Source: Phallusia mammillata
Lineage: Eukaryota
Direction of reading: 5' to 3'
Length of the DNA stretch: 64,000 nucleotides
NCBI GenBank assembly: GCA_965637545.1
Contig: OZ281494.1
Location: 34,100,001 to 34,164,000 of the forward strand
The position numbers and the translations under genes are program-made. Shown here one piece after another: positions 10,155 through 62,015 of this stretch. Within the stretch, counting starts at the first letter, position 1; each line of letters starts with the position of its first letter. The notes beneath the pieces were generated by a model. It was given only the letters and a program-made list of their open reading frames with translations, was not told the origin of the DNA and searched no databases.

Positions 10155-11581
10155 TTATGACTTTTTGGGCGACTTCAACCAAACTTGAACTTCTGAAATA
10201 AGTATTTCAAAATCCCGAGCTTGGTATTGCAAAGCAAATGGGATTTCCTCTGTCTGAATAAGTTCCATTTTGTCAGACAGAATCTCCTTGATAGTTTGTG
10301 AAGCTGTAACCGTCTGTCCGTCTTTGTCTAAAAATCCACCGATCCAGTTCTCCTAAATTTGTTAAGCACTTTGTTAACAACGTGATACACCAGTGTTTTA
10401 GCTACCTAATATTTTATAATGCATGTTGCAAGTTGCGAAATTAACATGGAATTTACGCAAATATTAGCAACAAAAGTTAGCATTTGTTTATTTTTAAAAT
10501 GAGGCGAAAATTGATTGAGTTGCCTAAATCTTAAATTGATGCTGGTTATTTTAAAAACCCAGTATGCAGTTTGCCGTTTCGTGCTTATTGTATTGCGGAG
10601 GCTACAGACTTGACTGAGTTTCACAGTTCATTCTTAACAAAGCTTATGACACAACCTTTGGTGTGAAATCTTCCAATGGGTCATGTGGAGACGCGATCAC
10701 ACAAATTCCATAATCATCCAAAAGGTTAGGAAGGTTCCTTAACACTTTTATTGGGTTCTCAAGACGCCCAATCACGTTGCTTATCACTACACAACCGAAC
10801 GTGCCAATGTCAGAAGGCAAAGCCTGGACATCTCCCAACTGAAAACTACACCTGCTTCGGTCCTAAACAAGTTATGTATGTTTAGTCAAATACATGATAA
10901 TGAAGTAAAGGTTCTTTTGAGCCTGCTATCACAACTCGCAAACAGATGCAAACTTACAATTGAATCTGGTATCTCAGCCAGCATTTCTTTTTTCAAGTCA
11001 CCCTCTTCACCAGCGTAAATTTTTGCTTTTCCGTTTTCCTTCAGTTCTTCACAAAACTCAATGAAGCCTTTGCAATAATCGAACCCGATAACTTCATCAA
11101 ATTTCGCTGCCAGGTTGAACGTGACACCACCAACGTTGCATCCAAGATCCAAAGCTCTTTTGTTGGTGCACGCCTGGGTACAAACATGGAAAACTGTATC
11201 AGCAATTAACAATACACGGAAAAATGTTCAATATCCGGGTCAACCCTAACGTTTGTTTTATGTAGACCAGCGATAACGGCACCAGAGTACATTGGAATCG
11301 AGGTAATCCTGCGCCTTTTTTATAAACGGTCCCTTTAAGGTTAATTTAATAAACGGTCTTTTCAAGGTTTGACGCACAAGGTTTAACACAAAACAAAGTT
11401 AAATAATAAAAATTACCCCGTCAACAGAATCAAGAGACAATTTAGACAGCTTCTCGACAAATTCGAAAGTTTCTGCTGGAATAAATTTGCTCCAACGCTT
11501 TTTGAGGTGGCGGGCGCCATAATGCATTCCTGTGAACAGGTTTAACCAGTCCATATGGTTTTTAACATAAAGAGACTCCAT
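10155..11581 (-). CDS. OvoA-Cterm-like SAM methyltransferase copy 1 (261 aa); complement join(11417..11581,10958..11173,10656..10862,10155..10352)
   Basis: Four exons of 165/216/207/198 nt with GT-AG phase-0 introns. Motifs HYG, RALDLGCNVGG (SAM motif I), DEVIGFD, EEGDL, GDVQALPSDIGTFGC, FTPKENWIGG, IPF..Q...R, VQVW. Confidence 0.9.
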
Positions 11582-12275
11582 GATCAACATCAATAACATA
11601 ACTACACAAAAACAAGTCGGATTCAGTTCCTCATTACTTACTAAAACAGATCGATATGTTTTGATAAAAAACTTCATGATGAAAATGAAATATTTACAAA
11701 ACACATTTTTCTCCTTTTTATTGCTGGTTCAACACCCATGGACAACGTCTTCACACATGCCCACCAGGTACTGAAGTTGTACAGCAGGATCAGGACACCT
11801 TTTACAATCTAATACCAATTACCGACATCTTACATGAAGTTTGGGGAGTCTTGTTTTAGCTTGGGAACAGCTATCAAACCAAAAAGTTAAAACAAGTCGC
11901 TGATCGAATGTATAAGTGCTTTGCACCAATGCGTGCCCTGGGTACCAATCTGCATCAGCCGAACTGCGAGAACATGAAAATAAAATCGTAATAATTCACA
12001 AAGACAACTTTTCATCAATCGTTCGCATCTATTTTTAAAAAATGCGACTACCAAATAATGCTTTCCTTGACTTGTGTCGCGTAATTCAACATAGACTGGT
12101 TTCCACTTGGTTCAGGGCTAATTCTTTTTCTAAAAGTTTTATCAAACATCTGCTACTCAAGCAGTTTCTTTTTTCTCACACGGCGCGGTTTCCTGGGAAT
12201 GCGACAAAACGATTTGTCTTGTCGTGCAAGACAAACTTCAGCTTTGTATTTCGAAATGAACTGCATGGTTTAGTG

Positions 12276-12573
12276 TTGGTAGTCAGCAACATAAAAACCT
12301 ACGGGTTCAAGATATTGCCTCAGGAAAATTCCGGTGAAAGTTTGTGCTCGCCGATGTTTACTTGAAGCAGATATGTTGATGTTAAACGGCAATGTCTGGT
12401 ACATGCTCAGTCGTTAATTAGCATTGTCATAGGCAAGACAAATCAAGCACACCTCGCTAAATGCGATTAGCAACACGCAACCGGACCGATACTTAATCCC
12501 ACATATCCAGGATTTTTACTGACTGTCAGGTGACTGTCAGGTGCTACGATGTTTTGTAAAATCGATCTGGCCC
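12276..12573 (+). mobile_element. Degenerate Ty3/Gypsy pol fragment (protease end to RT start)
   Basis: Frameshifted remnants ..KFVLADV..DVKRQCLVHAQS and PHIQDF..LSGATMFCKIDLA; homologous to 38570-38900. Confidence 0.7.
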
Positions 12574-13324
12574 TTGTGTGTTTTTCGACACAAACTTGAA
12601 GCACTATTCGGAACTTGGCTGCAACAGATCGGATGACAATTCTACAGGCTTTATCAGATGTCAATGTAACCATCCGTCGTCTGTGTTTAGCGTTCTTCTG
12701 AATCTGTTCCATTGCAGCACTTAGCAATAAAATCAACATTTTTGTCTCGATGTTGCTTGTTGTTTTGTTTTTTTATCAAAATACGCCTATATTATTTATT
12801 TGACATTTTTATTCACAATTTACAAGTTGTACAATGAATTTTAACTGTATATTATGATGCAAAATCTTTGTATTGGGGGCATTTCTTCCAAACTTGCACT
12901 TCTGATACAGCCAGTTCAAAATTCCGTTTTCTGTATTGATTCACAAACGGGATTTCTTGGACCTCAAGCAATTTCATCTTTTTGCACAAAATGTCTCTGA
13001 TAGTTTTCGAAGCAGTGATCTCAGTTCCGTCTTAGTTCAAATACCCCCCGAGCCAGTTCTCCTGTGACATAACTTTGATCATTATTATGCAACAATTGCA
13101 GTATTATGCAATAATTGCAAGAGTTCGACATGACGAATTAAACTTACGGATCCGGCCCGCGACGGGGTTTTGAGCGGCCCGCAGACAGTTTCAGGTCTTA
13201 CATGATAATGTGGCCCGCGGCCACAGTCTGCCGCAATCCCCCACTACTTGCTTACAGCGTCAAATTGTAGTTGTAACGGACAGTACGCTCCACAATAGCA
13301 AAAAAAATTCCCGCCGTTGCTACC

Positions 13325-13556
13325 ATTGTACCATAAGTCCATTGTTACGACATAACTGCCAGCCAAGTGTGGCCTGCTTTCACGGTTTCCTTTGTTTCCA
13401 CACGTATAGGCAGGGTTGCCATACCGTCCTTATTTCTAAGATTGTACCATAAGTCCATTGTTACGACATAACTGCCAGCCAAGTGTGGCCTGCTTTCACG
13501 GTTTCCTTTGTTTCCACACGTATAGGCAGGGTTGCCATACCGTCCTTATTTCTAAG
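13325..13556. repeat. 116-bp direct tandem duplication spanning the left junction of a hAT MITE
   Basis: 13325-13440 equals 13441-13556; single-copy in unit 2 (~19435-19550). Confidence 0.92.
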
Positions 13557-13908
13557 ATTTGTCCTTATTTTGAAGGGCTATGTCTTAGAAAAGTTCATTG
13601 TCCTTATTTCTAAGAAATGTCCTTATTTTTGACTTGAGTCCTTATTTTGTCTTATTTTCAACAATTATGAGTCAAATTCCTGCTACAAGTAAAAGTAAAC
13701 CTAGACCTGAGCTGTTGTAAGATGCACGAAACATTTTCTCCGGACAAGGGGTTGCTGGAACAGACTGTTTCTGGCCAAAATATAGCATATGAAATGTCAT
13801 GGCTGGTATAAATGCAAAGATTTGTTCAAAAACGCTTGTTTTTGTTACGTATGAAAATTTGATTTTTCGATTGTCCTTATTTTTGGTTTCAAGTCGATGG
13901 CAACCCTG
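13527..13908. mobile_element. hAT MITE (382 bp)
   Basis: TIRs cagggttgccat...atggcaaccctg; perfect TSD cgtatagg; internal gtccttatt repeats. Confidence 0.92.
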
Positions 13909-15075
13909 CGTATAGGCTATAGGCTAGTTAGTGTTTCAGCAGTATCTCTAAGTCTGTGGTGTATGCATTAAATTTGCTGTGGTGAATAATTTTATGTTAT
14001 ATCAGTTAGATTGTTTGGACTGTATTGTATTTGTGATGTTCTTGAATGTATTTGGTTTAGGTCAGGGTTCTTCAACGGGGGCGATATCAAATTTTACATT
14101 TTGTTAATTTGGTTTCATGGTTACAGATGTATCTGTCACTTCTATCAAACTAAAAAAATCTGTAATGTTAAAACCATATTCCGTTTTTCTGCGATTCAGA
14201 CCCACGTTACAGCTTGAGTGGCATGAAATCGTCGTTTATGAAATTCATTTAACAAATTAAGCGCTTGTGTTGTAGGAGTTGGGAACAAACTTACAAACAT
14301 TCTGCTATACCTTCACGGTTTGTTCAACGGCTCTCAAGTCATCGTAGTGTTTATTTTTTGCGATAGGGCGAATAGACAAGCGATCAGTTTTTTGCGCAGC
14401 ATAGAATTTCCATTGTCCAATAATACACACAAGTTCCCCTGAGCACACCGAGGACCACTGTGAGCAGCGTTAGATGTGCCACATACAAATTTAACCGTAG
14501 TATACCAAAAGTTCCGTTTTCGTCTAAAACTCAGATTGTGCGCATCTATAAAGTCATATATGTGATCACATCCATATGAGTTAAACTTGTCAAACTCTTG
14601 TATCGGTTCGTGCAAGTTTGTTAGTGCTTAGTCATAGTAAAAGCCTCAAACACGACGTGGGTCAGAAACGGTGCATGACGGCCGGATTTGACCAGATTTA
14701 AACTCACATGAAGGAGGTATTACAAACAGAAACAGAGCAAATGAAAAAGCGGGTCAGCAGTTGTTTGTCTAACTGACCGGAGGCAAAGTAAAAGGTTTAC
14801 GAGCTTCTTAAAGACGCGGTACGCGACGAACAGTAAGTTGTTGTTTACCACTTGTCGTGGCAAGGCGGGAGTTGTTTTTACAAGTGAAATAACTTTTAAG
14901 CAAGAAAATAATTTACAGTTGGGCTATACAAAGCATATCATATCTTTAGCTAGAGTTTCTTTAAATAGGTCGACAGATTGCTACTGCACATGGTGCTATG
15001 ATAAATTCTCTAAATGCTTTGAAAAATGAGCATGTTTCCATTTTGTGTACAGTGTCGTTATAAGTTAGTGGAAAA

Positions 15076-16535
15076 ATGGAGTCACTTTATGCTAAACAAC
15101 ACACAGGCTGGCTAAACCAGTATGCTGGAATGCACTACGGTGCCCGTTACCTTAAAAAGCGTTGGAGCAAATTTCTTCCAGCAGAAAATTTCGAATTTAT
15201 CGAGAAACTTTCAAAGATGTCAATTGATGCTGTTGATGAGGTAACTGGACACAAGAAAAGTTTGTTCAATTTATTTATTTGCTTAGTCATTAGTCATTAT
15301 TTTTTACCCAGGCGTGCACCAACAAAAGAGCTTTAGATCTTGGATGCAATGTTGGTGGTATCACGTTCAACCTGGCAGCTAAATTTGATGAGGTTGTTGG
15401 GTTCGATTGTTCCGAAGGTTTCATTGAACTCTGTGAGGAATTGAAGAAAAACGGAAAAGCGACAATTTACTCCTGTGAAGAGGGAGAACTTGAAAATGAA
15501 ATGATGGCTGAGATACCAGATTCCATAGTAAGTTGATTTTGTCTGTCAAGAAGAGGTTCAATTCTTTTTATTCGTCTCTTGCTTGGAATGAAATATTAAT
15601 CAACCAATTTTAAATAATACAAAACTTTAAAAAAAAAAATTCTGCACAAAGAAATTGCGACTACCAGGGTTGGTACATCTTCGAAAACCGTTTCCCATCA
15701 ACCTTTTAAACCCAATGAGTTTTGTTTTTCTTCCCTTAGGACCGAAGCAAGTGCAGTTTTATGTTGGGAGATGCTCATGCTTTGCCTTCTGACATTGGAA
15801 CGTTCGGTTGTGTGGTCATAAGCAATGTACTCGATCGCCTCGAGAACCCGAAGAAAGTTTTAAAAACAATTCCTGACCTTTTGGCCGATCGTGGTATCTG
15901 TGTGATTGCGTCTCCTCATTGCTCTTTGGAACCATTTACACCAAAGGTAAGGCTTAGTTCGAAGTAAACAGCAAAGCCAGATAAAGCCAAAGAATAAGAT
16001 ATATATTACTTATGAAAGATGACCTACTTAAAAAGCAATCAATAATTCGCATAAATTCTGTTTTATAACCCATTTAAACAAAGAGAGATGAAAAGTGGCA
16101 TCTGAATGAGTGATTTATTACTTACACAAACTGATCAGTATTACGTGCCTGTTCTATAAAAGTAGACGCATGTCACAGTGTGTCGTATAAAAATCACTTG
16201 AGGTCGAACCGTAATGACTTTTTCATCAATCACAAATTTCTGACAAAGTGCGCACACTCATTTTGCTGAGTCGAATTGTTGACCAAAACCAATCAAGCCT
16301 TACTTGACCCGCAATAATGTTACTTATTAACGGGTAACAAATTTAGGAGAACTGGCTCGGTGGATATTTGAACAAAGACGGACAGACGGTTACAGCATCA
16401 CAAACTATCAAGGAGATTCTGTCTGACAAAATGGAACTTATTCAGACAGAGGAAATCCCATTTGCATTGCAATACCGGATTCGCAACTTTGAATTGGCTA
16501 TTTCTGAAGTTCAAGTTTGGAAAAAATACCCATAA
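15076..16535 (+). CDS. OvoA-Cterm-like methyltransferase copy 2 (258 aa); join(15076..15240,15312..15527,15740..15946,16347..16535)
   Basis: Same exon architecture, open frame, canonical splice sites; ALDLGCNVGG, NVLDRLENP, TPKENWLGG. Confidence 0.92.
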
Positions 16536-18384
16536 AATAATTAACAACCCTGCAAATATAGGCTACAACTTAATCGGCTATTGTACAATCTAATTTACAG
16601 AAGTCGACTATTCTTGTGGATTTTGTTAATAAAAAAACAAGCACACAACTTGTTTAAAAGTGACAAATAAGAAAATTTACATATTTTCGATATTGCGATG
16701 TAACTACCATGCGAAGAACTTACCAAGGTGTTAAAACCGTGTGACACCATGTGATTAAATTACCCATTAAAACAAGCGCGCGCTTTGATTACCATGTGAT
16801 GAAATTATTCTTTAAATTAGGGTTAATGCTTTACGGGTCTTTATACAGATAGTTATTTATGGTTTATCAGTGTCATTTTGAATTCACTTACTGACTATTC
16901 GGTAAAAAGTTCGTGTAATATTTTAGTGGTCTATGGAAAAAGTTGAATTGGCCACACTGGCTGGATAAACAGTTTACAAACCATATGTTCGAAAAGTTGA
17001 CTTATCAAATAAAAACAAGAGTCCCATAGTGTTTGGACTGTAACGAATACCCTTTATTGCAGTCACTTCAACAATCGCTGTTGTCGTTATAGTGTTTCAG
17101 CGCATTCTAAAAGTTGTCTTTGCACACTGGCGTGAATGGAGTTTATTTCGCTTGGTAAAACAAACTGTAGCAGCACTATTAAGCTAAAATGCCACCAAGC
17201 CGGAAATAGACGTGAGTTGAGACGTTATAAAGCGCGACAAAACTACGGTCACAAACAGTTAGAAGCGCGCTGCAGCTGTGGTCACTACATAGCTTTATAT
17301 GAAGCAGGAAATCGAGAGTGAGGTTGGCGCGTTAGGAAATCAAGAATGGCGATGACAACAAATTTTGATAAAATGTATTATCTACCTACAAGTTATTGAT
17401 TTTTTTAGGTGTTGTTATTATTTTATTATTTTCAATTACAGTTTTTCTCTGAAGTAAACATAGGTTGAATGGTACGGTTTTATCGAAGCAATAACAAATG
17501 TTTTACAGCAAGGAAACGCAAAGTTGTATAAACCCAAAATTCATTTTTTGAAGCAGGTTCAATTTATAACTCTTCACCAAAAGGCCGAATGTAATGTAGC
17601 TGGAGATTATTTTAGATTAATGTTGCAGTCGGGTACACGGTTATTTATCTGAGATGAAACAAAGTGTAATAATCTGTACAAAAACACTATACAAAAACAA
17701 GTCGGATTCAGTTCCTCATTACTTACTAAAACAGATCGATATGTTTTGATAAAAAACTTCATGATGAAAATGAAATATTTACAAAACACATTTTTCTCCT
17801 TTTTATTGCTGGCTCAACACCCATGGACAACGTCTTCACACATGCCCACCAGGTACTGAAGTTGTACAGCAGGATCAGGACACCTTTTACAATCTAATAC
17901 CAATTACCGACATCTTACATGAAGTTTGGGGAGTCTTGTTTCAGCTTGGGAAACAGCTATCAAACCAAAAAGTTAAAACAAGTCGCTGATCGAATGTATA
18001 AGTGCTTTGCACCAATGCGTGCCCTAGGTACCAATCTGCATCAGCCGAACTGCGAGAACATGAAAATAAAATCGTAATAATTCACAAAGACAACTTTTCA
18101 TCAATCGTTCGCATCTATTTTTAAAAAATGCGACTACCAAATAATGCTTTCCTTGACTTGTGTCGCGTAATTCAACATAGACTGGTTTCCACTTGGTTCA
18201 GGGCTAATTCTTTTTCTAGAAGTTATTTCTTCTGCACTTTGAATGTTTTATCAAACATCTGCTACTCAAGCAGTTTCTTTTTTCTCACACGGCGCGGTTT
18301 CCTGGGAATGCGACAAAACGATTTGTCTTGTCGTGCAAGACAAACTTCAGCTTTGTATTTCGAAATGAACTGCATGGTTTAGTG

Positions 18385-18682
18385 TTGGTAGTCAGCAACA
18401 TAAAAACCTACGGGTTCAAGATATTGCCTCAGGAAAATTCCGGTGAAAGTTTGTGCTCGCCGATGTTTACTTGAAGCAGATATGTTGATGTTAAACGGCA
18501 ATGTCTGGTACATGCTCAGTCGTTAATTAGCATTGTCATAGGCAAGACAAACCAAGCACACCTCGCTAAATGCGATTAGCAACACGCAACCGGACCGATA
18601 CTTAATCCCACATATCCAGGATTTTTACTGACTGTCAGGTGACTGTCAGGTGCTACGATGTTTTGTAAAATCGATCTGGCCC
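18385..18682 (+). mobile_element. Gypsy pol fragment (duplicate of 12276-12573)
   Basis: Same sequence carried in duplication unit 2. Confidence 0.7.
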
Positions 18683-19520
18683 TTGTGTGTTTTTCGACAC
18701 AAACTTGAAGCACTATTCGGAACTTGGCTGCAACAGATCGGATGACAATTCTACAGGCTTTATCAGATGTCAATGTAACCATCCGTCGTCTGTGTTTAGC
18801 GTTCTTCTGAATCTGTTGCATTGCAGCACTTAGCAATAAAATCAACATTTTTGTCTCGATGTTGCTTGTTGTTTTTTTTTTTTATCAAAATAGGCCTATA
18901 TTATTTATTTGACATTTTTATTCACAATTTACAAGTTGTACAATGAATTTTAACTGTATATTATGATGCAAAATCTTTGTATTGGGGGCATTTCTTCCAA
19001 ACTTGCACTTCTGATACAGCCAGTTCAAAATTCCGTTTTCTGTATTGATTCACAAACGGGATTTCTTGGACCTCAAGCAATTTCATCTTTTTGCACAAAA
19101 TGTCTCTGATAGTTTTCGAAGCAGTGATCTCAGTTCCGTCTTAGTTCAAATACCCCCCGAGCCAGTTCTCCTGTGACATAACTTTGATCATTATTATGCA
19201 ACAATTGCAGTATTATGCAATAATTGCAAGAGTTCGACATGACGAATTAAACTTACGGATCCGGCCCGCGACGGGGTTTTGAGCGGCCCGCAGACAGTTT
19301 CAGGTCTTACATGATAATGTGGCCCGCGGCCACAGTCTGCCGCAATCCCCCACTACTTGCTTACAGCGTCAAATTGTAGTTGTAACGGACAGTACGCTCC
19401 ACAATAGCAAACAAAAATTCCCGCCGTTGCTACCATTGTACCATAAGTCCATTGTTACGACATAACTGCCAGCCAAGTGTGGCCTGCTTTCACGGTTTCC
19501 TTTGTTTCCACACGTATAGG

Positions 19521-19902
19521 CAGGGTTGCCATACCGTCCTTATTTCTAAGATTTATCCTTATTTTGAAGGGCTATGTCTTAGAAAAGTTCATTGTCCTTA
19601 TTTCTAAGAAATGTCCTTATTTTTGACTTGAGTCCTTATTTTGTCTTATTTTCAACAATTATGAGTCAAATTCCTGCTACAAGTAAAAGTAAACCTAGAC
19701 CTGAGCTGTTGTAAGATGCACGAAACATTTTCTCCGGACAAGGGGTTGCTGGAACAGACTGTTTCTGGCCAAAATATAGCATATGATATGTCATGGCTGG
19801 TATAAATGCAAAGATTTGTTCAAAAACGCTTGTTTTTGTTTCGTATGAAAATTTGATTTTTCGATTGTCCTTATTTTTGGTTTCAAGTCGATGGCAACCC
19901 TG
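19521..19902. mobile_element. hAT MITE (duplicate of 13527-13908)
   Basis: Same TIRs and TSD cgtatagg. Confidence 0.92.
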
Positions 19903-21069
19903 CGTATAGGCTATAGGCTAGTTAGTGTTTCAGCAGTATCTCTAAGTCTGTGGTGTATGCATTAAATTTGCTGTGGTGAATAATTTTATGTTATATCAGT
20001 TAGATTGTTTGGACTGTATTGTATTTGTGATGTTCTTGAATGTATTTGGTTTAGGTCAGGGTTCTTCAACGGGGGCGATATCAAATTTTACATTTTGTTA
20101 ATTTGGTTTCATGGTTACAGATGTATCTGTCACTTCTATCAAACTAAAAAAATCTGTAATGTTAAAACCATATTCCGTTTTTCTGCGATTCAGACCCACG
20201 TTACAGCTTGTGTGGCATGAAATCGTCGTTTATGAAATTCATTTAACAAATTAAACGCTTGTGTTGTAGGAGTTGGGAACAAACTTACAAACATTCTGCT
20301 ATACCTTCACGGTTTGTTCAACGGCTCTCAAGTCATCGTAGTGTTTATTTTTTGCGATAGGGCGAATACACAAGCGATCAGTTTTTTGCGCAGCATAGAA
20401 TTTCCATTGTCCAATAATACACACAAGTTCCCCTGAGCACACCGAGGACCACTGTGAGCAGCGTTAGATGTGCCACATACAAATTTAACCGTAGTATACC
20501 AAAAGTTCCGTTTTCGTCTAAAACTCAGATTGTGCGCATCTATAAAGTCATATATGTGATCACATCCATATGAGTTAAACTTGTCAAACTCTTGTATCGG
20601 TTCGTGCAAGTTTGTTAGTGCTTAGTCACAGTAAAAGCCTCAAACACGACGTGGGTCAGAAACGGTGCATGACGGCCGGATTTGACCAGATTTAAACTCA
20701 CATGAAGGAGGTATTACAAACAGAAACAGAGCAAATGAAAAAGCGGGTCAGCAGTTGTTTGTCTAACTGACCGGAGGCAAAGTAAAAGGTTTACGACCTT
20801 CTTAAAGACGCGGTACGCGACGAACAGTAAGTTGTTGTTCACCACTTGTCGTGGCAAGGCGGGAGTTGTTTTTACAAGTGAAATAACTTTTAAGCAAGAA
20901 AATAATTTACAGTTGGGCTATACAAAGCATATCATATCTTTAGCTAGAGTTTCTTTAAATAGGTCGACAGATTGCTACTGCACATGGTGCTATGATAAAT
21001 TCTCTAAATGCTTTGAAAAATGAGCATGTTTCCATTTTGTGTACAGTGTCGTTATAAGTTAATGGAAAA

Positions 21070-22533
21070 ATGGAGTCACTTTATGCTAAACAACACACAG
21101 GCTGGCTAAACCAGTATGCTGGAATGCACTACGGTGCCCGTTACCTTAAAAAGCGTTGGAGCAAATTTCTTCCAGCAGAAAATTTCGAATTTATCGAGAA
21201 ACTTTCAAAGATGTTAATTGATGCTGTTGATGAGGTAACTGGACACAAGAAAAGTTTGTTCAATTTATTTATTTGCTTAGTCATTAGTCATTATTTTTTA
21301 CCCAGGCGTGCACCAACAAAAGAGCTTTAGATCTTGGATGCAATGTTGGTGGTATCACGTTCAACCTGGCAGCTAAATTTGATGAGGTTGTTGGGTTCGA
21401 TTGTTCCGAAGGTTTCATTGAACTCTGCGAGGAATTGAAGAAAAACGGAAAAGCGACAATTTACTCCTGTGAAGAGGGAGAACTTGAAAATGAAATGATG
21501 GCTGAGATACCAGATTCCATAGTAAGTTGATTTTGTCTGTCAAGCAGAGGTTCAATTCTTTTTATTCGTCTCTTGCTTGGAATGAAATATTAATCAACCA
21601 ATTTTAAATAATACAAAACTTTTTAAAAAAAATTCTGCACAAAGAAATTGCGACTACCAGGGTTGGTACATCTTCGAAAACCGTTTCCCATCAACCTTTT
21701 AAACCCAATGAGTTTTGTTTTTCTTCCCTTAGGACCGAAGCAAGTGCAGTTTTATGTTGGGAGATGCTCATGTTTTGCCTTCTGACATTGGAACGTTCGG
21801 TTGTGTGGTCATAAGCAATGTACTCGATCGCCTCGAGAACCCGAAGAAAGTTTTAAAAACAATTCCTGACCTTTTGGCCGATCGTGGTATCTGTGTGATT
21901 GCGTCTCCTCATTGCTCTTTGGAACCATTTACACCAAAGGTAAGGCTTAGTTCGAAGTAAACAGCAAAGCCAGATAAAGCCAAAGAATAAGATATATATT
22001 ACTTATGAAAGATGACCTACTTAAAAAGCAATCAATAATTCGCATAAATTCTGTTTTATAACCCATTTAAACAAAGAGAGATGAAAAGTGGCATCTGAAT
22101 GAGTGATTTATTACTTACAAACTGGTCAGTATTACGTACTTGTGGTCAGTAGGTAAAGTAAACGCATGTCACAGTGTGTCGTGTAAACAGGTCACTTGAG
22201 GTCGAACCGTAATGACTTTTTCATCAATCACAAATTTCTGACAAAGTGCGCACACTCATTTTGCTGAGTCGAATTGTTGACCAAAACCACTCAAGCCTTA
22301 CTTGACCCGCAATAATGTTACTTATTAACGGGTAACAAATTTAGGAGAACTGGCTCGGTGGATATTTGAACAAAGACGGACAGACGGTTACAGCATCACA
22401 AACTATCAAGGAGATTCTGTCTGACAAAATGGAACTTATTCAGACAGAGGAAATCCCATTTGCATTGCAATACCGGATTCGCAACTTTGAATTGGCTATT
22501 TCTGAAGTTCAAGTTTGGAAAAAATACCCATAA
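21070..22533 (+). CDS. OvoA-Cterm-like methyltransferase copy 3 (258 aa); join(21070..21234,21306..21521,21733..21939,22345..22533)
   Basis: Almost identical to copy 2; by eye differs by S>L (MSID/MLID), A>V (DAHAL/DAHVL) and one silent change. Confidence 0.92.
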
Positions 22534-24592
22534 AATAATTAACAACCCTGCAAATATAGGCTACAACTTAATCGGCTATTGTACAATGTAATTTACAGAA
22601 TTCGACTATTGTTGTGGATTTTGTTAATAAAAAAACAAGCACACAACTTGTTTAAAAGTGACAAATAAGAAAATTTACATATTTTCGATATTGCGATGTA
22701 ACTACCATGCGAAGAACTTACCAAGGTGTTAAAACCGTGTGACACCATGTGATTAAATTACCCATTAAAACAAGCGCGCGCTTTGATTACCATGTGATGA
22801 AATTATTCTTTAAATTAGGGTTAATGCTTTACGGGTCTTTATACAGATAGTTATTTATGGTTTATCAGTGTCATTTTGAATTCACTTACTGACTATTCGG
22901 TAAAAAGTTCGTGTAATATTTTAGTGGTCTATGGAAAAAGTTGAATTGGCCACACTGGCTGGATAAACAGTTTACAAACCATATGTTCGAAAAGTTGACT
23001 TATCAAATAAAAACAAGAGTCCCATAGAGTTTGGACTGTAACGAATACCCTTTATTGCAGTCACTTCAACAATCGCTGTTGTCGTTATAGTGTTTCAGCG
23101 CATTCTAAAAGTTGTCTTTGCACACTGGCGTGAATGGAGTTTATTTCGCTTGGTAAAACAAACTGTAGCAGCACTATTAAGCTAAAATGCCACCAAGCCG
23201 GAAATAGACGTGAGTTGAGACGTTATAAAGCGCGAAAAAACTACGGTCACAAACAGTTAGAAGCGCGCTGCAGCTGTGGTCACTACATAGCTTTATATGA
23301 AGCAGGAAATCGAGAGTGAGGTTGGCGCGTTAGGAAATCAAGAATGGCGATGACAACAAATTTTGATAAAATGTATTATCTACCTACAAGTTATTGATTT
23401 TTTTTAGGTGTTGTTATTATTTTATTATTTTCAATTACAGTTTTTCTCTGAAGTAAACATAGGTTGAATGGTACGGTTTTATCGAAGCAATAACAAATGT
23501 TTTACAGCAAGGAAACGCAAAGTTGTATAAACCCGAAATTCATTTTTTGAAGCAGGTTCAATTTATAACTCTTCACCAAATACCGAATGTAATGTAGCTG
23601 GAGATTATTTTAGATTAATGTTGCAGTCGGGTACACGGTTATTTATCTGAGATGAAACAAAGTGTAATAATCTGTTTTAGCATGACTTGTAGATTGCAGT
23701 CTGACACAGCGAAAACTAAATTCTCGCCTTAAAGAATATTTAACTGGCAGTCAAAAACATGAAACTTATAAAGTACGCCTCATGCGAACATGTTGTGGTA
23801 TGTGAACCTAGCATTAATTTTAATAACGCTAAATAGTTAGTTAGTCGAAAGAACCTACGGTTGATTTTTGAAAGTTGCCCTATTAATTCTAGTCCGAAAC
23901 GTTTGTTTGGTATTTTCACAACAAATACAAAACACTAGAAAAGAAAACGAAAAAGGGTGGAGAATCGGAGGTTTGGCGCGATAAACGATAAACAAGGAGT
24001 AAAAGGACCAGTTCTTAAAGCAGCTGTCAATTATGAACATGTCCATGCCTGGTTTTGAGTCAGACACCCCCGGCCATGGTGGGTGAACGTGCCATGATTC
24101 CCGAAACAACCTCGGATTTACAACAGATGTTTAGACAGATGTATATGCTGGCATATAGCGTGTTTTGCAACATTTAATGTTTCTGTCATTGCTATTGACA
24201 ACATGTTACGCAAGATCACCTAAGGTAAAAGGAAAACATTAAAACGGAAATCACAAAACTGAAGTAACGCGACAACAGACTCGTGGACTAAACAAACACC
24301 AAAATAAACACGTATTACAAACAACACGCCCTACGCAAGTGATGCGAACCACGTAACGATTTATTAAACTGGCGAAATATGTGTACATAAGGGACAAGCC
24401 GTTGGACAACGCATTTAGAAGTTTTTTGAACAGTTATAGCTAGTTTTTTTGAACAGTTATAGATATGTAGCAGAGGCAGGCATTGGTGCAAGGCGTTGTT
24501 AAAAACTTTCTGTGTCTTACAGGCAGCAAAGAGAAACAGTATAAAGCGCTCAGAAAGTGTGATAATAGTTACATTGTTGTTGCCACTAAAAA

Positions 24593-26596: not shown

Positions 26597-27215
26597 CCTT
26601 TATTGTAACTTACAATTAAACAATGTAAATTAAGAAAACGATTGCTTTGTTGCCTTGTACAGAAAAATCAATAAGCATTTTAATGTCTTAAGATTTAGTT
26701 ACTTAAGGCGCAAAAATGGTGTTCTTTTAATTTAAAAACTTGCGCAATAAAACAATATGACATTGTGTATGGTTTTATTTCAAAGCTTGTACCTAAGAGA
26801 CCGTTCTGTAAAAGATTACCTTGGACTTTCAGCGTCAAATCCCGCATTTCGGACACTTCTTTAGAAATCATATTTTTTGCTTTCAAACTTGGTCGCGGAC
26901 TGTGCGTCGTGTTGATAATTAACTGGACGTTATACAATCTCCGAATCGCAAGAGTGTAGAGATTGTAGAACCGCAAAAAAACGTGTTTCCAAACAACTAG
27001 AACAGTGTTGCATCACAAAAAATCTGGTTCATGTCGACATGTTTCTTACAAACGCCAAGCTTTCCGCAAGGTTTACAGAAAGTTATAGGTCAATGTGCAT
27101 GAGGAAGATGCAAGAAATCTTAGCCTAGTCCTGTGGTCGGCAAACTATGGACAGCAAATTGGGCCTCGACGTGTAATTAAAAATCAATATTATTACGTTA
27201 TTTGATGGTGTAACC

Positions 27216-52695: not shown

Positions 52696-53031
52696 TTGTT
52701 CTAAATGCACAAGTAAACGTATTTCAGGATCTTTTCGAGGAAATCTTTAATAGTTTGCTACCCTCAAATGAAAGGAATGGCGTGTTACTTTTTTGCAGTC
52801 GTACATGTTCAAGAATAGTTGTGAAGACAATTTTGTGAATTTCTATCATAACTATCACGTATTCACTGGTGTAGGTTTGTAGCTGAAGAAAGCTTTGTTC
52901 CTTTAAATTTGGGTAACGTAAATTTAACTAAAAATCTCAAATGTTTTCCCGAAAGCAACTGCACTGTAACAGTTATTTGTCGAAACAAAAAAATATTACC
53001 GCCATCGTGGTTTTGTTTGATGCAGTAAGTC

Positions 53032-55730
53032 ATGGAGTCGCTTTATATCAGGAAACATATGATATGGCTGAACATGTTCACAGGAATGCATTACGGTGCC
53101 CGCTACCTTCAAAAACGTTGGAGCAAATTTATTCCAGAAGAAAATTTTGAATTTGTCGAAAAGTTTTCCAAGTTGACGATTGATTCATTTGATGAGGTAG
53201 TTACGAATTGAACATTTTTCACTTTAAAACATACTCTTTTTAACAAATTACACATCCTAATTCCTCCCCAATAGTGTAAATAGTAGATACTAAACCAGGG
53301 GTGGAGAACCGTTTGATTCATAAAGGCCACCCAACGTGTTGTCGACACTCGTGTAGGTCGCATCGAATATTTTTCAGGTTTAGAACAGTGGTTTATAAAT
53401 ATTTTTGTTTACATAATGCTCGTTTTGCAATCTTTCCCAATAGCACGTTCCAAGCTGAGTGCAATGATATACCTATATAAACTCCCCACTATATTTCCAC
53501 TACAACATTCAAGATTTATTTCACCTACAGATTCGATTTTTACGCATATCAATTCTAAGAGAAGTTTGTTACATCGGAGACAAATCTAAAATATTGCATT
53601 ATGCGCAAACAATTGGTTAATTATCACATAAATAAGATTGTTGAGTCATAAGCTTTTATAGTAGTCCCACGAAAATAACTAGTGGTAAAACAACTGGTCT
53701 AGAACCAATCAAATAGCAACCTAAGAAAGGAAATAAAGGTGGATAAAACTAGCATTTCTACATATTTCTTTTCGGCTGATGCACTGTGCTATATCAAGGT
53801 CTTTAAAGAGATTTTGACAGCGAAGGCCGCACTTACTGCACAAAAGGGCCACAGGTTCTCCACCTTTGTGCTAAACCGTACAAGATCATTTAAAAATGGG
53901 CCATTATCAACTTCACAGGTTATATCCTCAGAGCTAATGCGTCTATTTACAAACCACAAGTAGGCTACAAATTAAAGTAAAATACTTCCCGGTTGGGGCC
54001 ACTTCTTTAGCATATCTAAGCTTATTGATAGTTGCCCACTTTACTTTTGTAATTCAGGCGTGCACCAACAAAAGAGCTTTGGACGTTGGCTGTTGTGTTG
54101 GTGGTATCACGTTCAACCTAGCCCAAAAATTTGATGAAGTTGTCGGTATCGACTATTCCAGAGGTTTCCTTGAGGTTTGTGAGGAATTGAAGAAAAACGG
54201 GAAATCGAAAATTTACTTGTGCGAAGAGGGCGACCTGGAAAGAGAAATGATGGCTGAGATACCAGATTCAATTGTAAGTCTGATTAAAAATATAGGGACT
54301 GTATTAACGTAAACCAGTGATCGGCAATCTTTCATTACCTGGGCCAAAACATTCTTAACAAGCATGCGCGAGAAAAAAATTTACCGAAAGCAAGTTTCAT
54401 CTCTACAAACACATTTGAAACGCGAGTTTAATTTAGCTACTTCTTCTCTTCAAATTTAAGTGTTATACACTTCACGTCAAAATTTACGTCGCTAAAAAAG
54501 TAACCAAGCGTGATAAGGAAAGAGGTTATAAAAAACTTTGATTTCTAATAATTGATTCTTTAGAACCGTAGCAGATGCACTTTTATGTGGGGAGATGTCC
54601 ATGCTTTGCCTTCTGACCTGGGAAAGTTCGGTTGTGTTGTCATAAGCAACGTAATTGACCGTCTCGAAAACCCTATTAAAGTGTTAAAGAGCCTTTCCGA
54701 CCTCGTGGCTGATAACGGCGTCTGTGTGGTCGCTGATGGTCATTGTGTCCTAGAAGCGTTTACACCAAAGGTATTTCGCACTATAAAGAGGACTTGCATA
54801 TTTGCAACTTATGTGTTTCGCGTGCTTTCAGTGGATATTCACATTCATTAATGTTTAGCTTGGGGCTGTATGTTCCTGCATAGGCTCCGAGTGGGCGGTG
54901 GCGGGGTGGCGCCGCCACCTTGGGTTTGTAAAGCACGGTGGCGGTCACCGTGATTTTTTTGGTTGTTTATAGCGGTATCGTACGTACATCGTCAAAACTA
55001 GCGTGCTGGCGAAAAAGCAACAAGAAACTGCAACCTTGTTCATGACGCCAAATTGTTGCCATTGTTGTGTGCAATTCGATCGTGCTGTAATAAATGTTTT
55101 TTTAGCTGATACAAAGCAGCAACAACGTGACGAAACATTTTTTAAACGCCGCTAAACCAATTATAAACGTTACACAGCAAAGTGGCCCCAATAAATATTA
55201 CTGCAAAACCGTTTTTTAACAAATTTGGACAAAAGTTGCACTCCATCGGAAGTTTGCTGGGCTTTGTGTTTGAGCACGCATTAGTGACGTGACGTCACAC
55301 AAAATGACGTCATACTTAAAGTCCGCCACTTTGCATTTTTGTAAAACTCGGCGCCTATGTGTTCTTGTATGTTTGTCAAAACGTTATGTTTTTACATTAT
55401 ATTTGGCTTGTCTGTTTCTTACCAAAGTAACTTATTGTTATTTTTATGTTACCTAGATTAATACTCACATTTTTGCTTGGGGTTTAATGACAAATTAGAA
55501 AAGTTATGTAAATAGTTTTACAATTTTAGGAGAACTGGCTTGGTGGATATGTGAACCAAGATGGAAAAGTAGTTGAATCAACAAATTCTATAAAGGAGAT
55601 TCTGTCTGATCAAATGGAACTCATTCAGACTGTTGATATTCCATTTGTGGAACAAGTTCAAGGCCGTGTGTTTCAACTGTATATTGCAGAAGTTCAAGTC
55701 TGGAAAAAGTTGCCAAAACCAATTAAATAA
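53032..55730 (+). CDS. OvoA-Cterm-like methyltransferase copy 11 (262 aa); join(53032..53196,54058..54273,54564..54770,55530..55730)
   Basis: Open frame, canonical sites; ALDVGCCVGG, ADGHCVLEAFTPK. Confidence 0.92.
53296..53868. mobile_element. hAT (Buster-like) MITE in copy 11 intron 1
   Basis: TIRs caggggtggagaacc...ggttctccacctttg; TSD tactaaac/tgctaaac. Confidence 0.85.
54879..55359. mobile_element. hAT-type MITE in copy 11 intron 3
   Basis: TIRs cataggctccgagt...actcggcgcctatg; TSD tgttcctg/tgttcttg. Confidence 0.85.
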
Positions 55731-57216
55731 AAATGTTATTTTGTAATATTGATTACTAACACATGATATTTGGTCTTGGAAATTATAATCAAATATTGCA
55801 AAACACTAATGGCTTTGATAGAGCAAAAACTACAATTAGCCTCTATTTTTTCAGGGCAAATGTTTTTGCAATATTGACAAACTGGAAACGCCTTTGTTTT
55901 TTCACCAAAGTTATACACAAATATCAGTGTCAATAAATTATGAGTGTGCTGTGGTTTAACTTTGATTATTGTTGATGGTTTCACTTTGAATCATGCACTG
56001 ATGATCAAACTCATTTTACACTTTTTATTGCATCCACAAATGGTTATGCTGAAACAAAAACAGCCGATAACAAGAGATTCTGTGTTAGGGGAATAATTCA
56101 ATCAGAGTTCGGGAAATGTTCTGACAAAAGCAAAACTGTCTAAGCTTGTTTAATACACATTACCCTGGTTAAACGAAAAAAAATAGTTAACAACCACACA
56201 CTAAAATACCTATGTTTGTTTGACTGTGGAAAGCAAGATTTTTGGAATGTAGTGTAGGTTGAGCCATGCCATATGCTTTCTGGTATAAAGCAACTTGTCT
56301 GTTTACTATAACAAAAAACACTGCGTCAAGTGAAAAGACAGTATTTTTTATCATGTTCACCAAAAAAACATGATAAAATATAATTCTATCGATCCGATTA
56401 AATGTGTCCAGGTCAAATGAAAAAAATCGCAATTGTTCATAAAGTCCAGTTTTCACTTTCCTAAAAGGGACCGCAAAGTAAAAAATCCGCTTGTAGATCG
56501 CGCGCTTATGGTTTTCACACATTCTGTGGCATAGATATCAGTTTGCGCAACACGTGTAAATTTGTGAGAAGTGTACCAATTGTCCCCGCCAATTTTTTAA
56601 TGCTAGATATGTTAGGTATGTGACGTAACAACCTGCATTTGGTTCAATGCAATGCAAGGTAAAGGTAGTTTTGCAAAACTCGAGTGAAACACGTTTACTT
56701 ATGTTACTTAACCGCGGTAAGACGTTTGCTTAACACGTATCTTTTGGTGAAGCACTGTTTTAGGAGTTGCAAAACACGTATCTTGATGTGAAACATTGTA
56801 TTTTGATGTAAAACACTTCCTTGCGTTTGTTTGCATTAAATTAATCTCATAGCGGTTCAAGATGTTACTTGTTCTGAATGGACCACTAGCACAAAGTAAA
56901 CGTATTTGAGGATCTTTTAAGGTGGAAATCTTTTAATAGTTTGAAGCTCTTATATGAAGGGAATGAAGTGTTACTTTATTGCAGTCGAACGTGTTTAAGA
57001 ATAGTAAGACGATTTTGTAAATTTCTGTCGTAGTTATTATGTATTTAACTGGTGTAGGTTTGTAGCTATAAGAAAAGCTTTGTTTCGTTAAATTTGGGTC
57101 AGGTAACTTTGACTAAAAATTTCAAAAGTTTTAACAAAAGTAATTTCATTGTAACAGTTTTTTGGTCGAAACAAAAAGTAATACCACCATCGTGGTTTTG
57201 TTTGATGCAGTAAGTC

Positions 57217-58842
57217 ATGGAGTCGCTTTATACTAGGAAACATATGATATGGCTGAACCAATTTACAGGAATGCATTACGGTTTCCGCTACCTTCAAAAA
57301 CGTTGGAGCAAATTTATTCCAGAAGAAAATTTTGAATTTGTCGAGAAGTTTTCAAAGTTGTCCATTGATTCATTTGATGAGGTAGTTAAGAGTTAAACTC
57401 TTTTACTTTAACTTGTGTTATCCGCCACTTATATAAGTGGCACCTAATTCAGCGGCATGTTAGGCAATTTACACAAAATTGGACATAAGCTACCTGTCTT
57501 TAATGTATTCATGTATAGATAATGTGTGTATAAGGGTATGTTGTTCCACATAAACGCTTCAGTGCTGATCCCTATATAATGCTCTTAAATACATATTCAT
57601 AGTTGCCTATTTTACTTTAATTTTCACTCAGGCGTGCACCAACAAAAGAGCTTTGGATCTTGGATGCAATGTTGGCGGAGTCACGTTCAAGTTGGCATCG
57701 AAATTTGATGAAGTTATCGGTATCGACTATTCCAAAGGTTTCATTGAGGTTTGTGAGCAACTAAAGAAAAACGGGAAAGCCCCAATATACCCGTGCGAAG
57801 AGGGCGACCTGGATACAGAAATGATGGTTGAGATAACAGATTCAATTGTAAGTTGATTAGGTTTTCTTCTTGGTGGGCTACACAAACCACCAAACAAAAC
57901 AGCGTTAATTGCTCTTGTGCAAACATACACCACATATTACAAATTATTAACTCTTTAACGAACATGTAATCCCCACAAAGATATTGTTGTTCGTAAAGCT
58001 GCCATCCACACAATGCTCACCACAATCTTAATCGGTCTAGGTGTTTTTCTAGTTGTTAGTGACATAATTTTGATTCTAATTAATTAAGTATTTAGGACCG
58101 AAGCAGGTGCAGATTTTTGTGGGGAGATGCCCATACTTTGCCTTCTGACATTGGAAAGTTTGGTTGTGTGGTTGTAGCCAACCTGACTGACCGTCTCGAA
58201 AACCCCAAGAAGATTTTAAAAAGCCTTCCTGACCTCGTGGCTGATAACGGTATCTGCGTGGTCGCGGAAGCTCACGTTTACATGGAAGCTTTTACACCAA
58301 AGGTATTTCTCACTATAAAAGTGGCTTTCCTGTATGTGCGCAAGTTATGTATACTACATGCTTTTAATGGATATTCACATTAATAACTTGCTAGGCTCAG
58401 GAACTGCATACTCATAAACTAATATTTGCGTGTAAAAGGGCAAAAATTGGTGAATCAAAATAACATTTACCAAAAACTTAACTTACAGATGGACACATAC
58501 TGTGTTCAAAAACATTATTTGAAAAAAGACAAAAAATTTAAAGTCACAAGTTATTTGTATGTCGCAAGGTTGATACTCACAGTTTAATTTTGGCTTTGCT
58601 GACAAATTAAAAAAGTTATGCAAACTTGTTTACAATTTCAGGAGAACTGGCTTGGTGGATATGTGGATCAAGATGGACAAGTAGTTGAATCAACAAATTC
58701 TATAAAGAAGATTCTGTCTGATCAAATGGAACTCATTCAGACTGTTGATATTCCATTTGTGCAACAGGATCAGGGCCGTGTATTTCAACTTGCTATTCCA
58801 GAAGTCCAAGTCTGGAAAAAGTTGCCAAAAACAATAAAATAG
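57217..58842 (+). CDS. OvoA-Cterm-like methyltransferase copy 12 (262 aa); join(57217..57381,57632..57847,58096..58302,58642..58842)
   Basis: Open frame, canonical sites; ANLTDRLENP, AEAHVYMEAFTPK. Confidence 0.92.
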
Positions 58843-61472
58843 CCTTTTTATTTTCCATTGAAAAATGTAAATTGATAATATAGATTAGTAATTCACAATA
58901 TTATTATGAGTCTTGTAACTGAAAATCAAATATGCAATTTATGGTTTTGATAAAACAAAAAGTTTAACACAAAAAAAAACAAGATTAGTATCATTACCGT
59001 AACAGGCAAACTATAACTTGGAAAATGTTTCTGATTACAATGACAAACTGCAAACACATTTGTTTTTGCACCAGAGCTTGTTTTTGCGCCACAAAATATT
59101 TGGGCCAAAATTGTATGCAACTTTTGCAAGTGTCAATTTCCATGGTCATAAGTTTGTGACCGGTATATCAGTTTCTTGTAGCAGTGGTACCTAGAGTATC
59201 AATTCATTTATAAATCCCTTTTTTGCAAAATATATTTGTTGTCAAAATAAGTGAGTTGTTGTGCCCAAGGCTACTGGTGTTAAAAGTGAGAGTAAATAAC
59301 TTAGTAAGCTAAGGCTGAAATTAGGCGACTGGCGATCATTTTAAATGGTGCATTGTTAAGGGACACAAAAAAGGTGAACAACTTTATGGTCCATGCATAC
59401 ATTAAAGTTCTCCCAAACATAATTGAACAGTTGTTCTTTGATATATTCCTGAATGATTTTATCCAAGTGGCTTTTGGTCTGTTCAGTTACAGTTGTTGTA
59501 TAGTTAAAGTGGGCATGGTGTTTACTCAATGTGTTTCAATTCCTACTGTAATGTGTTTTCAATTCCTAAGTTCTATGATTATGTTCAATATTCATCTAAG
59601 TCAGATAAAGCAAAAAAAAATATTTACAGTCCCGTTTAAAAGTAAGTGATTCTGCCATACCACATTGAAAGTAATCTGTAATAGCTCATTAGTACCTAAC
59701 TGACAGACTGCTAATTTTAGAAAAACTTACCCAGTGGATATTTCAATGAAGAGTGACAAAAGGTTACAACAATTAAACTGAAGATTTATACTCTTTCGGG
59801 TGAAATGTAACTAATTGAGAAAGTGAATATTTCATTTGTACTTCAAGACCAATTCCGCACTTTTTAAGTGTCCATCGCAAAAGTTCAAGCCTGAAAAAAC
59901 GCAAAAATTAAAGTGACAAACTTGACAACATGCAAGTGAAACATATATATAGCATTAAAGACATTGGCTTCAATTTTGTCATATATTGCAAAAACCTTTT
60001 TAAGCAAAAAATATACCTATTTAATAAATTGTTTAAAAAAGTCCAAAATTAGGTTTATTAAAGTGATATAAACTGACACAAATATGGCCGCTGGTTAAGC
60101 AGCTTGAAATTTAGGACCCAAAAGTATGTGGTGGGGACTTACAATCAAGTGTGGGTTAGACACATAATAACAGCTTTTGATAAACATATTCATTACATAC
60201 AAGCTCTCTGGCAGTTTTACTTACAAGTGCATTGCTGAGTAGATTGAATTTTGATCATAAAAGGGTTAGGTTTAGTGTTTGCGAATAGTCTATTAGACAC
60301 AGTATTTATTTTAGTAGATTAGACGGTAACGATAATAATCAAACAACCACAACTGTAACAGTGTACTTTCATAGACATACCCATTCTTGTGTCTGAAAAC
60401 CATAAACTTGTGCACCAGTTGCTTTGTATTGGGATACCAAGGAGTTTATTCTGATGGAATTTATCACTTTGCTTTTCAGTGTGACAACCAAGCATATTTA
60501 TGTGTACAATAGTCACCATACAAGACCACAGAGAATAGCCCTTTTAGATGCCTTTATAAAAAAGAAAAGAAGGTGACAACATAACATGTTTAGAATTGCA
60601 TTTGTTCAAGAGTTTTGTGTAGAGTTCTGATAAGTAATGGGATCACCATATCTCACAGAGCACTTTGCAAATAAACAACACAAATTCATTTTTAATGCAT
60701 GCATAGTGACAAATGGCAACTCTTCTTGGTCAGAGAAATATTCTAGGTAATTAGATGTTCCAATTAAAAGCAAGAAACAGCATTTAAACTACAGTTGCTA
60801 GTAAAGTGTAAACAATTGTCAGTGGTTTTAAACAGTCTTATAATATCAAACATATTAAAGTTAAAGGTGTTTGAATCCACTTTAACCAAAACATTTGTGG
60901 TTTCGTTTTCCTTCACACATCCTCCATGCGTTTACAAAACATAGCAGTCAGCACCAACAAAGCTATCTTAGCTGGATTTAATGCAGTTTTACATACAATT
61001 GGAATGAAACTTTCCCTTGCTACTTTCTATTGGCTATTACTAGATAATATACCACAACATTTATTCCATGCAGTTTACACATTGAGTAATAAACTTTTCT
61101 TATCAAAAACTATTTTGCTTGTTTTTTCACAGTATTTAATCAAACCAAATTTTTTTTTCTGTCACAAAGATAAATAAACCTACTAATATTAATGTGAACT
61201 AAATGTTACCTTACTAATTCATTTTTACCCAAATCAACGATATTAGGATGACACAAACGCCAGACACCGCATTCCATTTCCACTCCCGCAAAAAAAAACG
61301 AAAACTGTCTGATTTCACAAAAATGGTTACAGACTGGCGGATAAAAACATCGATTAGATTTTTTAGATTTGTCATTCATTTCGCAATTTCATTATAATGC
61401 TTCTTTATTCAAACAAATTTTGCACGACAAAACAAGAATCAAGTTCATAATTTACTGTGTACTATTTAATTT

Positions 61473-62015
61473 TTAATTTGTTTGAACAATTTTTGAAGAC
61501 TTCTTCCAAATTTGGACTTCTGAAATATTCAGCTCAAAGTCACGATACCGGTATTGCATCGCAAATGGAATATCAACTGTCTGAATGAATTCCATTTGAT
61601 CAGACAGAATCTCCTTGATAGTTGTTGAAGCTTTAACAGCCTGTCCATCTTTGTTTGAATATCCACCAACCCAGTTCGCCTAAAATCACCTAAGGCTTGT
61701 TAATGCCTGCGTTTACAATTCACTCTTTTTAGGAGTTTATAACTAAAGCGAATTTACAGAAACGTACTTACAACTTTTAAGGCAAATATTTCAGCAAATG
61801 TTTTTTATTCTACCAAACAATTTGATTTTTTGTACTAGTACCACTACTTTATTGGCTACAGCAAAAAGTTAATTGTTGATTTTATTTGACCAAAGTAACA
61901 CTGGGGTTGTGAAACTTGAGGCAACATTCACCTCAATCAAATCAATTGCACATAATTGCCTTTGGTGTAAACTCTTCTGAAGAATAGTGGGGAGAAGCGA
62001 TTACGCAGATTCCGT
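61473..62015 (-). pseudogene. Methyltransferase copy 13: intact exon 4 (61473..61679) and 3' end of exon 3 (61960..62015), interrupted by an LTR element
   Basis: Exon 4 reads ANWVGGYSNKDG...IPFAMQYRYRDFELNISEVQIWKK. The exon 3 remnant ..GICVIASPHYSSEEFTPK stops abruptly at the LTR start. The intron 3 donor is GC. Confidence 0.88.

Follow-up and report, generated by a model that had tools for sequence, protein, structure and literature searches.

Ovothiol and related thio- and selenohistidines are major redox metabolites of marine animals. Three enzymes, OvoA, OvoM and OvsM, provide the closest solved structures to the proteins described here. In the structure of OvoA, residues T690–Q700 form a dimer strand, and the G653–K662 hairpin docks on the sulfoxide-synthase domain (PMC10696552). 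PDB entry 9BXL was deposited as OvoM, a 5-thiohistidine N-methyltransferase. OvsM is a stand-alone enzyme that in vitro methylates the N-π position of 5-selenohistidine, not histidine, and the genes for these bacterial enzymes often adjoin ovsA/senBC (bioRxiv 10.1101/2024.04.10.588772). Because OvoM and OvsM are stand-alone bacterial methyltransferases, both this kind of enzyme and its stand-alone form are already known, characterised and solved in bacteria (PDB 9BXL and 9BXH). Here we describe a 64,000-nucleotide stretch of the 240-Mb assembly of the ascidian Phallusia mammillata (C1:34,100,001–34,164,000; hereafter the window), which carries a tandem array of genes for stand-alone methyltransferases of this family. 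The reading that we favour, with moderate confidence, is that the array is a lineage-specific expansion of methyltransferases predicted to be active and dependent on S-adenosylmethionine (SAM), whose substrate, cellular location or assembly would have changed.

An array of OvoA-type methyltransferase genes

Genes were located by tblastn with exon peptides taken from the open frames of the window, followed by splice-site modelling. Twelve intact genes (G1–G12) were obtained, each with four exons of 165 (159 in G6), 216, 207 and 189–207 nt, and without exception their introns run from GT to AG in phase 0. Three of them (G1, G7 and G8) are encoded on the minus strand, the other nine on the plus strand. 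The products are 258–264 amino acids long and share 61–87% pairwise identity, apart from the G2/G3 pair (99%); 94 of the 264 alignment columns are invariant among the window copies. The array extends ∼10.7 kb beyond the window, up to ∼C1:34,174,693, and outside the window it includes two further intact genes, G14 (+) and G15 (−), so that the whole comprises 14 intact genes and one broken gene (G13) across ∼64.5 kb. Array-type copies are also dispersed in the genome, intact at C1:33.705 Mb and C3:17.81 Mb and with stops at C3:13.12 Mb. An earlier reading of the locus, made from the sequence alone (the sequence-only reading), had listed 12 intact genes and one interrupted copy on both strands, with a shared exon architecture, products of ∼260 amino acids and about six subtypes. 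The tblastn and splice models agree with it on each of these counts, the tree described below giving roughly 6–7 subtypes, and its outer limits were exact: the stop codon of G1 ends at position 10155, and 62015/62016 is the break point of G13.

Family membership was assessed with TIGR04345 (ovoA_Cterm), an NCBIfam equivalog domain with a curated cut-off of 170 bits. For the array, the scores are sums of single-exon scores from G5 and G8. Exons 2, 3 and 4 gave 68, 52.4 and 40 bits for G5 (160 in sum) and 69.1, 45.6 and 40.2 bits for G8 (155 in sum), and in both genes they cover profile positions 41–105, 115–182 and 183–242 colinearly; exon 1 of either gene, searched alone, gave no match to the profile. 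The true whole-protein score of the array proteins is probably just below the cut-off. By comparison, five stand-alone proteins of the type conserved among animals (hereafter canonical) scored 231–246 bits. With a home-made family hidden Markov model, array-type proteins reached 218–260 bits, ∼70% of the 331–371 bits of canonical animal proteins. Pfam matches of the array exons were to generic class I methyltransferase domains only. Among solved structures, exon 4 of G8 matched OvoM 9BXL (E = 7e-12), OvoA 8KHQ (2e-8) and OvsM 9BXH (4e-4), and exon 3 matched OvsM 9BXH (3e-7). The colinear profile matches of exons 2–4 and the identity of these nearest structures uphold the original assignment to the OvoA C-terminal family. 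Each array gene has an ATG of its own at the domain boundary and is not fused to a sulfoxide synthase.

The SAM-binding site is kept and four family motifs are replaced

Conservation was scored against 43 other family members, in which 43 columns are conserved at ≥80%; 31 of these columns are kept in the array. The retained set holds the entire SAM-binding set, LDxGCxVG, GxD, the acidic residue after strand 2, GD(A/V) and NxxxRLxxP. Because the SAM-binding motifs and these 31 columns are kept, the array proteins are predicted to be catalytically active and would take their methyl group from SAM.

The array lacks four motifs that are widespread in the family. RE[TH]xRK is found in 71% of 173 full-length family members, SPY[TS]W in 66%, FPxRC (a loose pattern) in about 89% and GCAVG in 95%, and none of them occurs in any of the 16 intact array-type proteins. 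RET-RK and SPYT are visible in the aligned solved enzymes 9BXL, 9BXH and 8KHQ, and all four motifs occur in near-exact form in canonical animal proteins. In the array the replacements read SPH../DPY../DVH.. and LQYRxR/EQDQxR. The segments that vary most among the paralogues are these motif replacements, residues 207–216 and residues 4–12. In alignment numbering, the T690–Q700 strand of OvoA covers the second half of the RETxRKxQH motif, and the G653–K662 hairpin aligns with variable segment 207–216; interface residue R692 and its acidic partner D682 persist in the array proteins. Since four motifs shared by the characterised N-π-methyltransferases and the canonical animal protein have been replaced in all copies, the canonical action on free 5-thiohistidine has most likely been lost by the array proteins. 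The more likely targets would be other small nucleophiles, possibly with an imidazole or thiol group; alternatively, the proteins may act elsewhere in the cell or in another assembly. The sequence-only reading had proposed retuning for new substrates, which is a reasonable, if tentative, interpretation.

The array derives from a canonical animal stand-alone gene

Among single exons in the genome, the highest TIGR04345 score belonged to a canonical copy at C1:7.8236–7.8254 Mb, which is 100% identical over 279 amino acids to the P. mammillata UniProt entry "Uncharacterized protein LOC100180046". The canonical Phallusia protein has 303 amino acids, scores 231 bits on TIGR04345 and carries an N-terminal hydrophobic segment, part of which comes from an additional 5′ exon. 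The last three introns of its gene lie at the same codons and in the same phase as those of the array genes, and its exons include the same lengths of 216 and 207 nt. The exon-2 boundary of the array genes also recurs in exon-sized canonical-type open reading frames (ORFs) from other sources. The array proteins have lost the hydrophobic segment and begin at the domain boundary, with their MESLY aligned to the canonical PYES.

Among the matches listed, canonical orthologues of ∼290–306 amino acids came from sharks, rays, a chimaera, amphioxus, other tunicates, echinoderms, hemichordates, molluscs, annelids, a brachiopod, Trichoplax and Nematostella, and all were named "uncharacterized" or "methyltransferase type 11". 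The orthologues were found in animal groups reported to keep OvoA; no canonical orthologue from insects, nematodes or bony vertebrates was among the matches listed. Ovothiol methylation in animals is a candidate role for the canonical gene.

Two trees were built. In the first, with 59 members, the 15 array-type proteins formed one clade (support of 100 in the SH-like approximate likelihood ratio test, SH-aLRT) on a stem of 0.99 changes per site, sister to the canonical gene of the same genome (92) and grouped with shark proteins (95). The second contained 26 eukaryotic canonical proteins (22 of them from named animals) and eight outgroup rows (one named bacterial, the rest metagenomic), and here the canonical genes broadly track animal relationships. 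All 15 array-type rows again formed a single clade (100/100; stem of 1.71), which fell within the tunicate group (80/97) in a three-way split with the Clavelina–Phallusia–Ciona and Styela groups, nested inside neither. From this placement, the array arose within tunicates when the canonical stand-alone gene was duplicated; long-branch effects are possible. The duplication was at the DNA level, with the phase-0 intron positions preserved, and the N-terminal hydrophobic segment, a putative anchor, was lost, which would have left soluble proteins. A sharp divergence (stem of 1–1.7 changes per site) was then followed by radiation into 6–7 subtypes under purifying selection.

Resident OvoA genes

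Loci matching TIGR04344 (ovoA_Nterm, the sulfoxide synthase) were found solely at C4:16.044–16.048 Mb and C1:22.719–22.724 Mb. No sulfoxide-synthase exons were found in or near the window, as had been stated for the window from its sequence. The TIGR04345 profile search gave no match beside either OvoA locus. Relaxed tblastn and reading of ORFs located a divergent class I methyltransferase-like module downstream of both, at 2368–3861 (−) of the stretch C4:16,040,000–16,049,999 and at 2592–3531 (−) of the stretch C1:22,715,000–22,724,999. Motifs of the module include VIGCGPGKLAFDL, VIACDASARCINFALKLKSNGK and LIINMYLDRAENP, and an intron interrupts the part that corresponds to exon 2 in the array genes. 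The only family that the module matched, below threshold, was Pfam CARME (carnosine N-methyltransferase; 21 bits, E = 2e-4), and an ESM Atlas look-up of the OvoA C-terminal piece returned generic methyltransferase look-alikes only. Because these divergent modules are retained downstream, OvoA is not split here and the array is not OvoA-derived. The proposal that OvoA is split in this genome was dropped because methyltransferase-like exons, weak but consistent, follow both OvoA loci.

Selection and expression

Pairwise ratios of nonsynonymous to synonymous substitution rates (dN/dS) among the array genes had a median of 0.24 and a range of 0.15–0.38, with synonymous divergence (dS) of 0.25–1.0 apart from G2/G3. 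Calculated for each of the four exons, dN/dS was 0.20–0.29, and in the most variable segments it was 0.36–0.69 versus 0.21 elsewhere. The array genes evolve under purifying selection. Positive selection was rejected at the level of dN/dS for pairs, exons and segments, all values being below 1. The sequence-only reading had called the cluster "diversifying"; as a claim about selection, this is not supported by the pairwise values of 0.15–0.38 or by the variable segments, which reach 0.4–0.7 when rounded.

RNA evidence was sought for G4 and G5 in the contigs of four RNA-like runs, which belong to three studies. The introns of G4 are spliced out exactly as modelled, with joints at 24757/25358 (four runs), 25573/25974 (two runs) and 26180/26396 (four runs). 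The contigs remain colinear through 43 nt upstream of the ATG, and within these 43 nt an in-frame stop lies 6 nt before the ATG. Since this stop is inside the transcribed 5′ untranslated region, G4 starts at its own ATG, in line with the earlier description of the genes as stand-alone. An extra joint from 25574 to 29120, with "AC" between and deeper coverage in two runs, is best explained as a spliced exon 2–exon 3 contig of G2/G3. RNA-like contigs were also seen within intron 1 of G4 (24948–25345), where they are of high depth, repeat-like and with many loose ends, and between G4 and G5 (27216–27781).

Layout of the window

G1 (10155–11581, −; 261 amino acids) has exons at 11581–11417, 11173–10958, 10862–10656 and 10352–10155. 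It is followed by two tandem units of 6 kb, 11601–17677 and 17686–23675, which are 98.2–98.9% identical and carry G2 or G3 together with a relic exon 4. The first unit holds the relic, which has an in-frame stop (12876–13064, −), and G2 (15076–16535, +; 258 amino acids; exons at 15076–15240, 15312–15527, 15740–15946 and 16347–16535); the second holds the duplicate of the relic (18985–19173, −) and G3 (21070–22533, +; 258 amino acids). Either the duplication is very recent, or the assembler has set two haplotypes one after the other.

The transcribed gene G4 (24593–26596, +; 262 amino acids) has exons at 24593–24757, 25358–25573, 25974–26180 and 26396–26596. Then come G5 (28449–29793, +; 264 amino acids) and G6 (31818–33143, +; 259 amino acids, with the 159-nt exon 1), the minus-strand genes G7 (35423–37400; 261 amino acids) and G8 (40193–41769; 262 amino acids), and, on the plus strand, G9 (44037–45526; 261 amino acids), G10 (47272–50223; 262 amino acids), G11 (53032–55730; 262 amino acids) and G12 (57217–58842; 262 amino acids). 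An exon-1 scrap of 11 codons (56258–56290, −) lies between G11 and G12, and a decayed exon 4 with several stops (59715–59891, +) lies beyond G12. With the relic exon 4 and its duplicate, these make four relic fragments, all found by tblastn, that were absent from the earlier list.

The 3′ part of G13 occupies 61485–62016 (−), with exon 4 at 61685–61485 and the end of exon 3 at 62016–61954; exons 1, 2 and 3a lie beyond the end of the window, at C1:34,164,458–34,165,221. Exon 3 is split by a 2441-bp insertion (window positions 62017–64000 and the next 457 bp). The insertion is bounded by direct terminal repeats of 480 bp, 99.8% identical, and its target site is duplicated over 5 bp. ORFs of the insertion gave no match in Pfam. 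It looks like a small non-autonomous element of the long terminal repeat type, recently inserted.

To the left of the array, at 3225–8785 (+), lie exons of at least one large leucine-rich-repeat protein (Pfam LRR_8, LRR_4 and LRR_5). A CAG is present 6–7 nt upstream of the ATG in G8, G11 and G12 (e.g. gcagTAAGTCATG). Spliced-leader trans-splicing occurs in ascidians, and this CAG could be a candidate acceptor for it. An Rfam search of the window gave no match.

Weighing of the explanations

Several points weigh against an expansion of active enzymes with changed function. Adaptive diversification is unsupported because no dN/dS value, those of the hot spots of variation included, reaches 1. 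Direct evidence of expression comes from one gene, G4, alone, and a transcript of G5 itself was not seen in the four RNA-like runs. The TIGR04345 scores of the array are exon sums from two genes, and the activity of both the array and the canonical proteins, like the substrate shift of the array, is predicted from sequence. In addition, as half of one replaced motif lies on the dimer strand of 8KHQ and the hairpin docks on its sulfoxide-synthase domain, the motif changes may reflect altered assembly or lost contacts, not a new substrate pocket. A more specific version of the expansion reading, in which the subtypes would be neofunctionalised and would each modify a metabolite of their own with an imidazole, thiol or selenol group (thiohistidine-derived or otherwise specialised), and in which the canonical gene, not the divergent OvoA C-terminus, would supply the true animal ovothiol methyltransferase, is put forward with low confidence.

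The array might instead serve dosage, still converting 5-thiohistidine into ovothiol A (or its selenium counterpart) by methylation, with the copies raising the capacity of that step. Methylation of 5-thio- or 5-selenohistidine is what characterised family members perform, and a separate methyltransferase could be needed because the two OvoA genes have a very divergent methyltransferase module of their own. Yet the canonical stand-alone gene, at 231 bits on TIGR04345, is already available for the ovothiol role; the array sits on a stem of 1–1.7 changes per site with the four signature motifs gone in 16 of 16 proteins; and its paralogues differ by 13–39% in protein sequence, beyond the need of a dosage array. 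We consider dosage unlikely. Non-catalytic proteins maintained by selection, whether SAM-binding proteins, scaffolds or pseudo-enzymes, would fit the loss of conserved non-SAM motifs and a summed score under the equivalog cut-off. They are nevertheless very unlikely given that every copy retains the SAM-binding motifs together with most of the family-conserved columns, and that purifying selection extends along the full length, exons 3 and 4 included.

Two further alternatives concern how the copies arose. Part of the copy number could be an artefact of haplotypes put in tandem, which the 98.2–98.9% identity of the 6-kb units and the dS of 0.006 between G2 and G3 would suit. The remaining copies, however, are separated by dS of 0.25–1.0 and by 13–39% of their protein sequence, and several DNA runs from different studies contain 64–78% of the sampled words of an 8.8-kb section (24500–33300), so that an artefact of this kind is quite unlikely. 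The sequence-only reading had left two origins open, a split from OvoA or descent from a stand-alone homologue. In favour of fission of a resident OvoA followed by amplification of the freed methyltransferase domain, the domain homology named in that reading was correct, as the TIGR04345 matches show, and no TIGR04345 match adjoins the OvoA N-terminal loci. Both loci, however, keep their own very divergent methyltransferase-like exons with a different intron position, and the exon boundaries of the array are those of the canonical stand-alone gene, the exon-2 boundary being present also in canonical-type exon-sized ORFs from other sources. Fission is extremely improbable on these grounds. Descent from a stand-alone homologue is the origin borne out: the phylogeny, which had been named as a check, places the array as one clade among the tunicate canonical stand-alone genes, and three intron positions are common to the array and the canonical gene of this genome.

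Comparison with known systems

In the literature searched, no paper was found on the stand-alone family in animals or on such an expansion. A word-indexed protein search with the 181-amino acid frame of G13 (exon 1, in-frame intron and exon 2) returned no match at E ≤ 0.001, and the ten best matches of an exhaustive HMMER search with exon 2 of G8 were all at ≤53% identity. The match sequences examined from the latter were either canonical or bacterial in type, and several were exon-sized ORFs. Close array-type relatives are therefore rare in the public protein sets searched, which does not imply their absence from other ascidians. Novelty had also been implied for the stand-alone form, and this part of the earlier claim falls away, since bacterial OvoM and OvsM are solved and animal orthologues of ∼300 amino acids are already deposited under the annotation "uncharacterized".

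Elsewhere in the genome, clusters of intron-free frames of ∼290–340 amino acids gave weak matches to the motif region of TIGR04345, at C2:6.235–6.245, C2:26.81–26.83, C3:29.03–29.05, C5:8.37 and C6:18.29–18.30 Mb. These clusters are probably other methyltransferase families in tandem arrays, and the array described here is less special because the same genome has such others.

Animals thus carry a conserved putative stand-alone enzyme of OvoM type, and in one ascidian the canonical gene gave rise to ∼18 paralogues, predicted to be soluble, in which the cofactor site is kept and the rest rewritten. The paralogues are under selection and at least partly expressed; they are concrete candidates for methylation steps in ascidian metabolism and a natural variant series for learning what determines substrate choice in the family.

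Set beside the bacterial OvoM and OvsM, the array proteins resemble them in stand-alone form (∼270 amino acids in the bacterial enzymes), in belonging to the same family with a colinear match and in their common SAM-binding motifs. They differ in that IRETxRKxQH and SPYT(L/W), carried by the bacterial enzymes, are replaced in every array copy, and in that the array genes are animal genes interrupted by introns, with no neighbours from the pathway in the window. The C-terminal domain of bifunctional OvoA (8KHQ) is likewise homologous, as judged by profile coverage of positions 41–242 and the exon 4 match (E = 2e-8), whereas the array genes lack a fused sulfoxide synthase, reach a summed score of ∼155–160 bits against the cut-off of 170, and are altered at the dimer-strand and hairpin residues of 8KHQ.

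The canonical animal gene (Ciona LOC100180046 type) is, by the tree, the immediate ancestor of the array, and three intron positions and the 216- and 207-nt exons are equal in the two. It differs in its length of ∼300 amino acids, its hydrophobic N terminus, its extra 5′ exon and its retention of all the signature motifs, and its protein is only 37–42% identical to the array proteins. The canonical gene is single-copy in this genome, and the tunicates among the best 120 matches were represented by canonical-type proteins only. Measured against these three relatives, what is new here is an animal array of a remodelled subfamily: the expansion of a known family and not a new kind of system.

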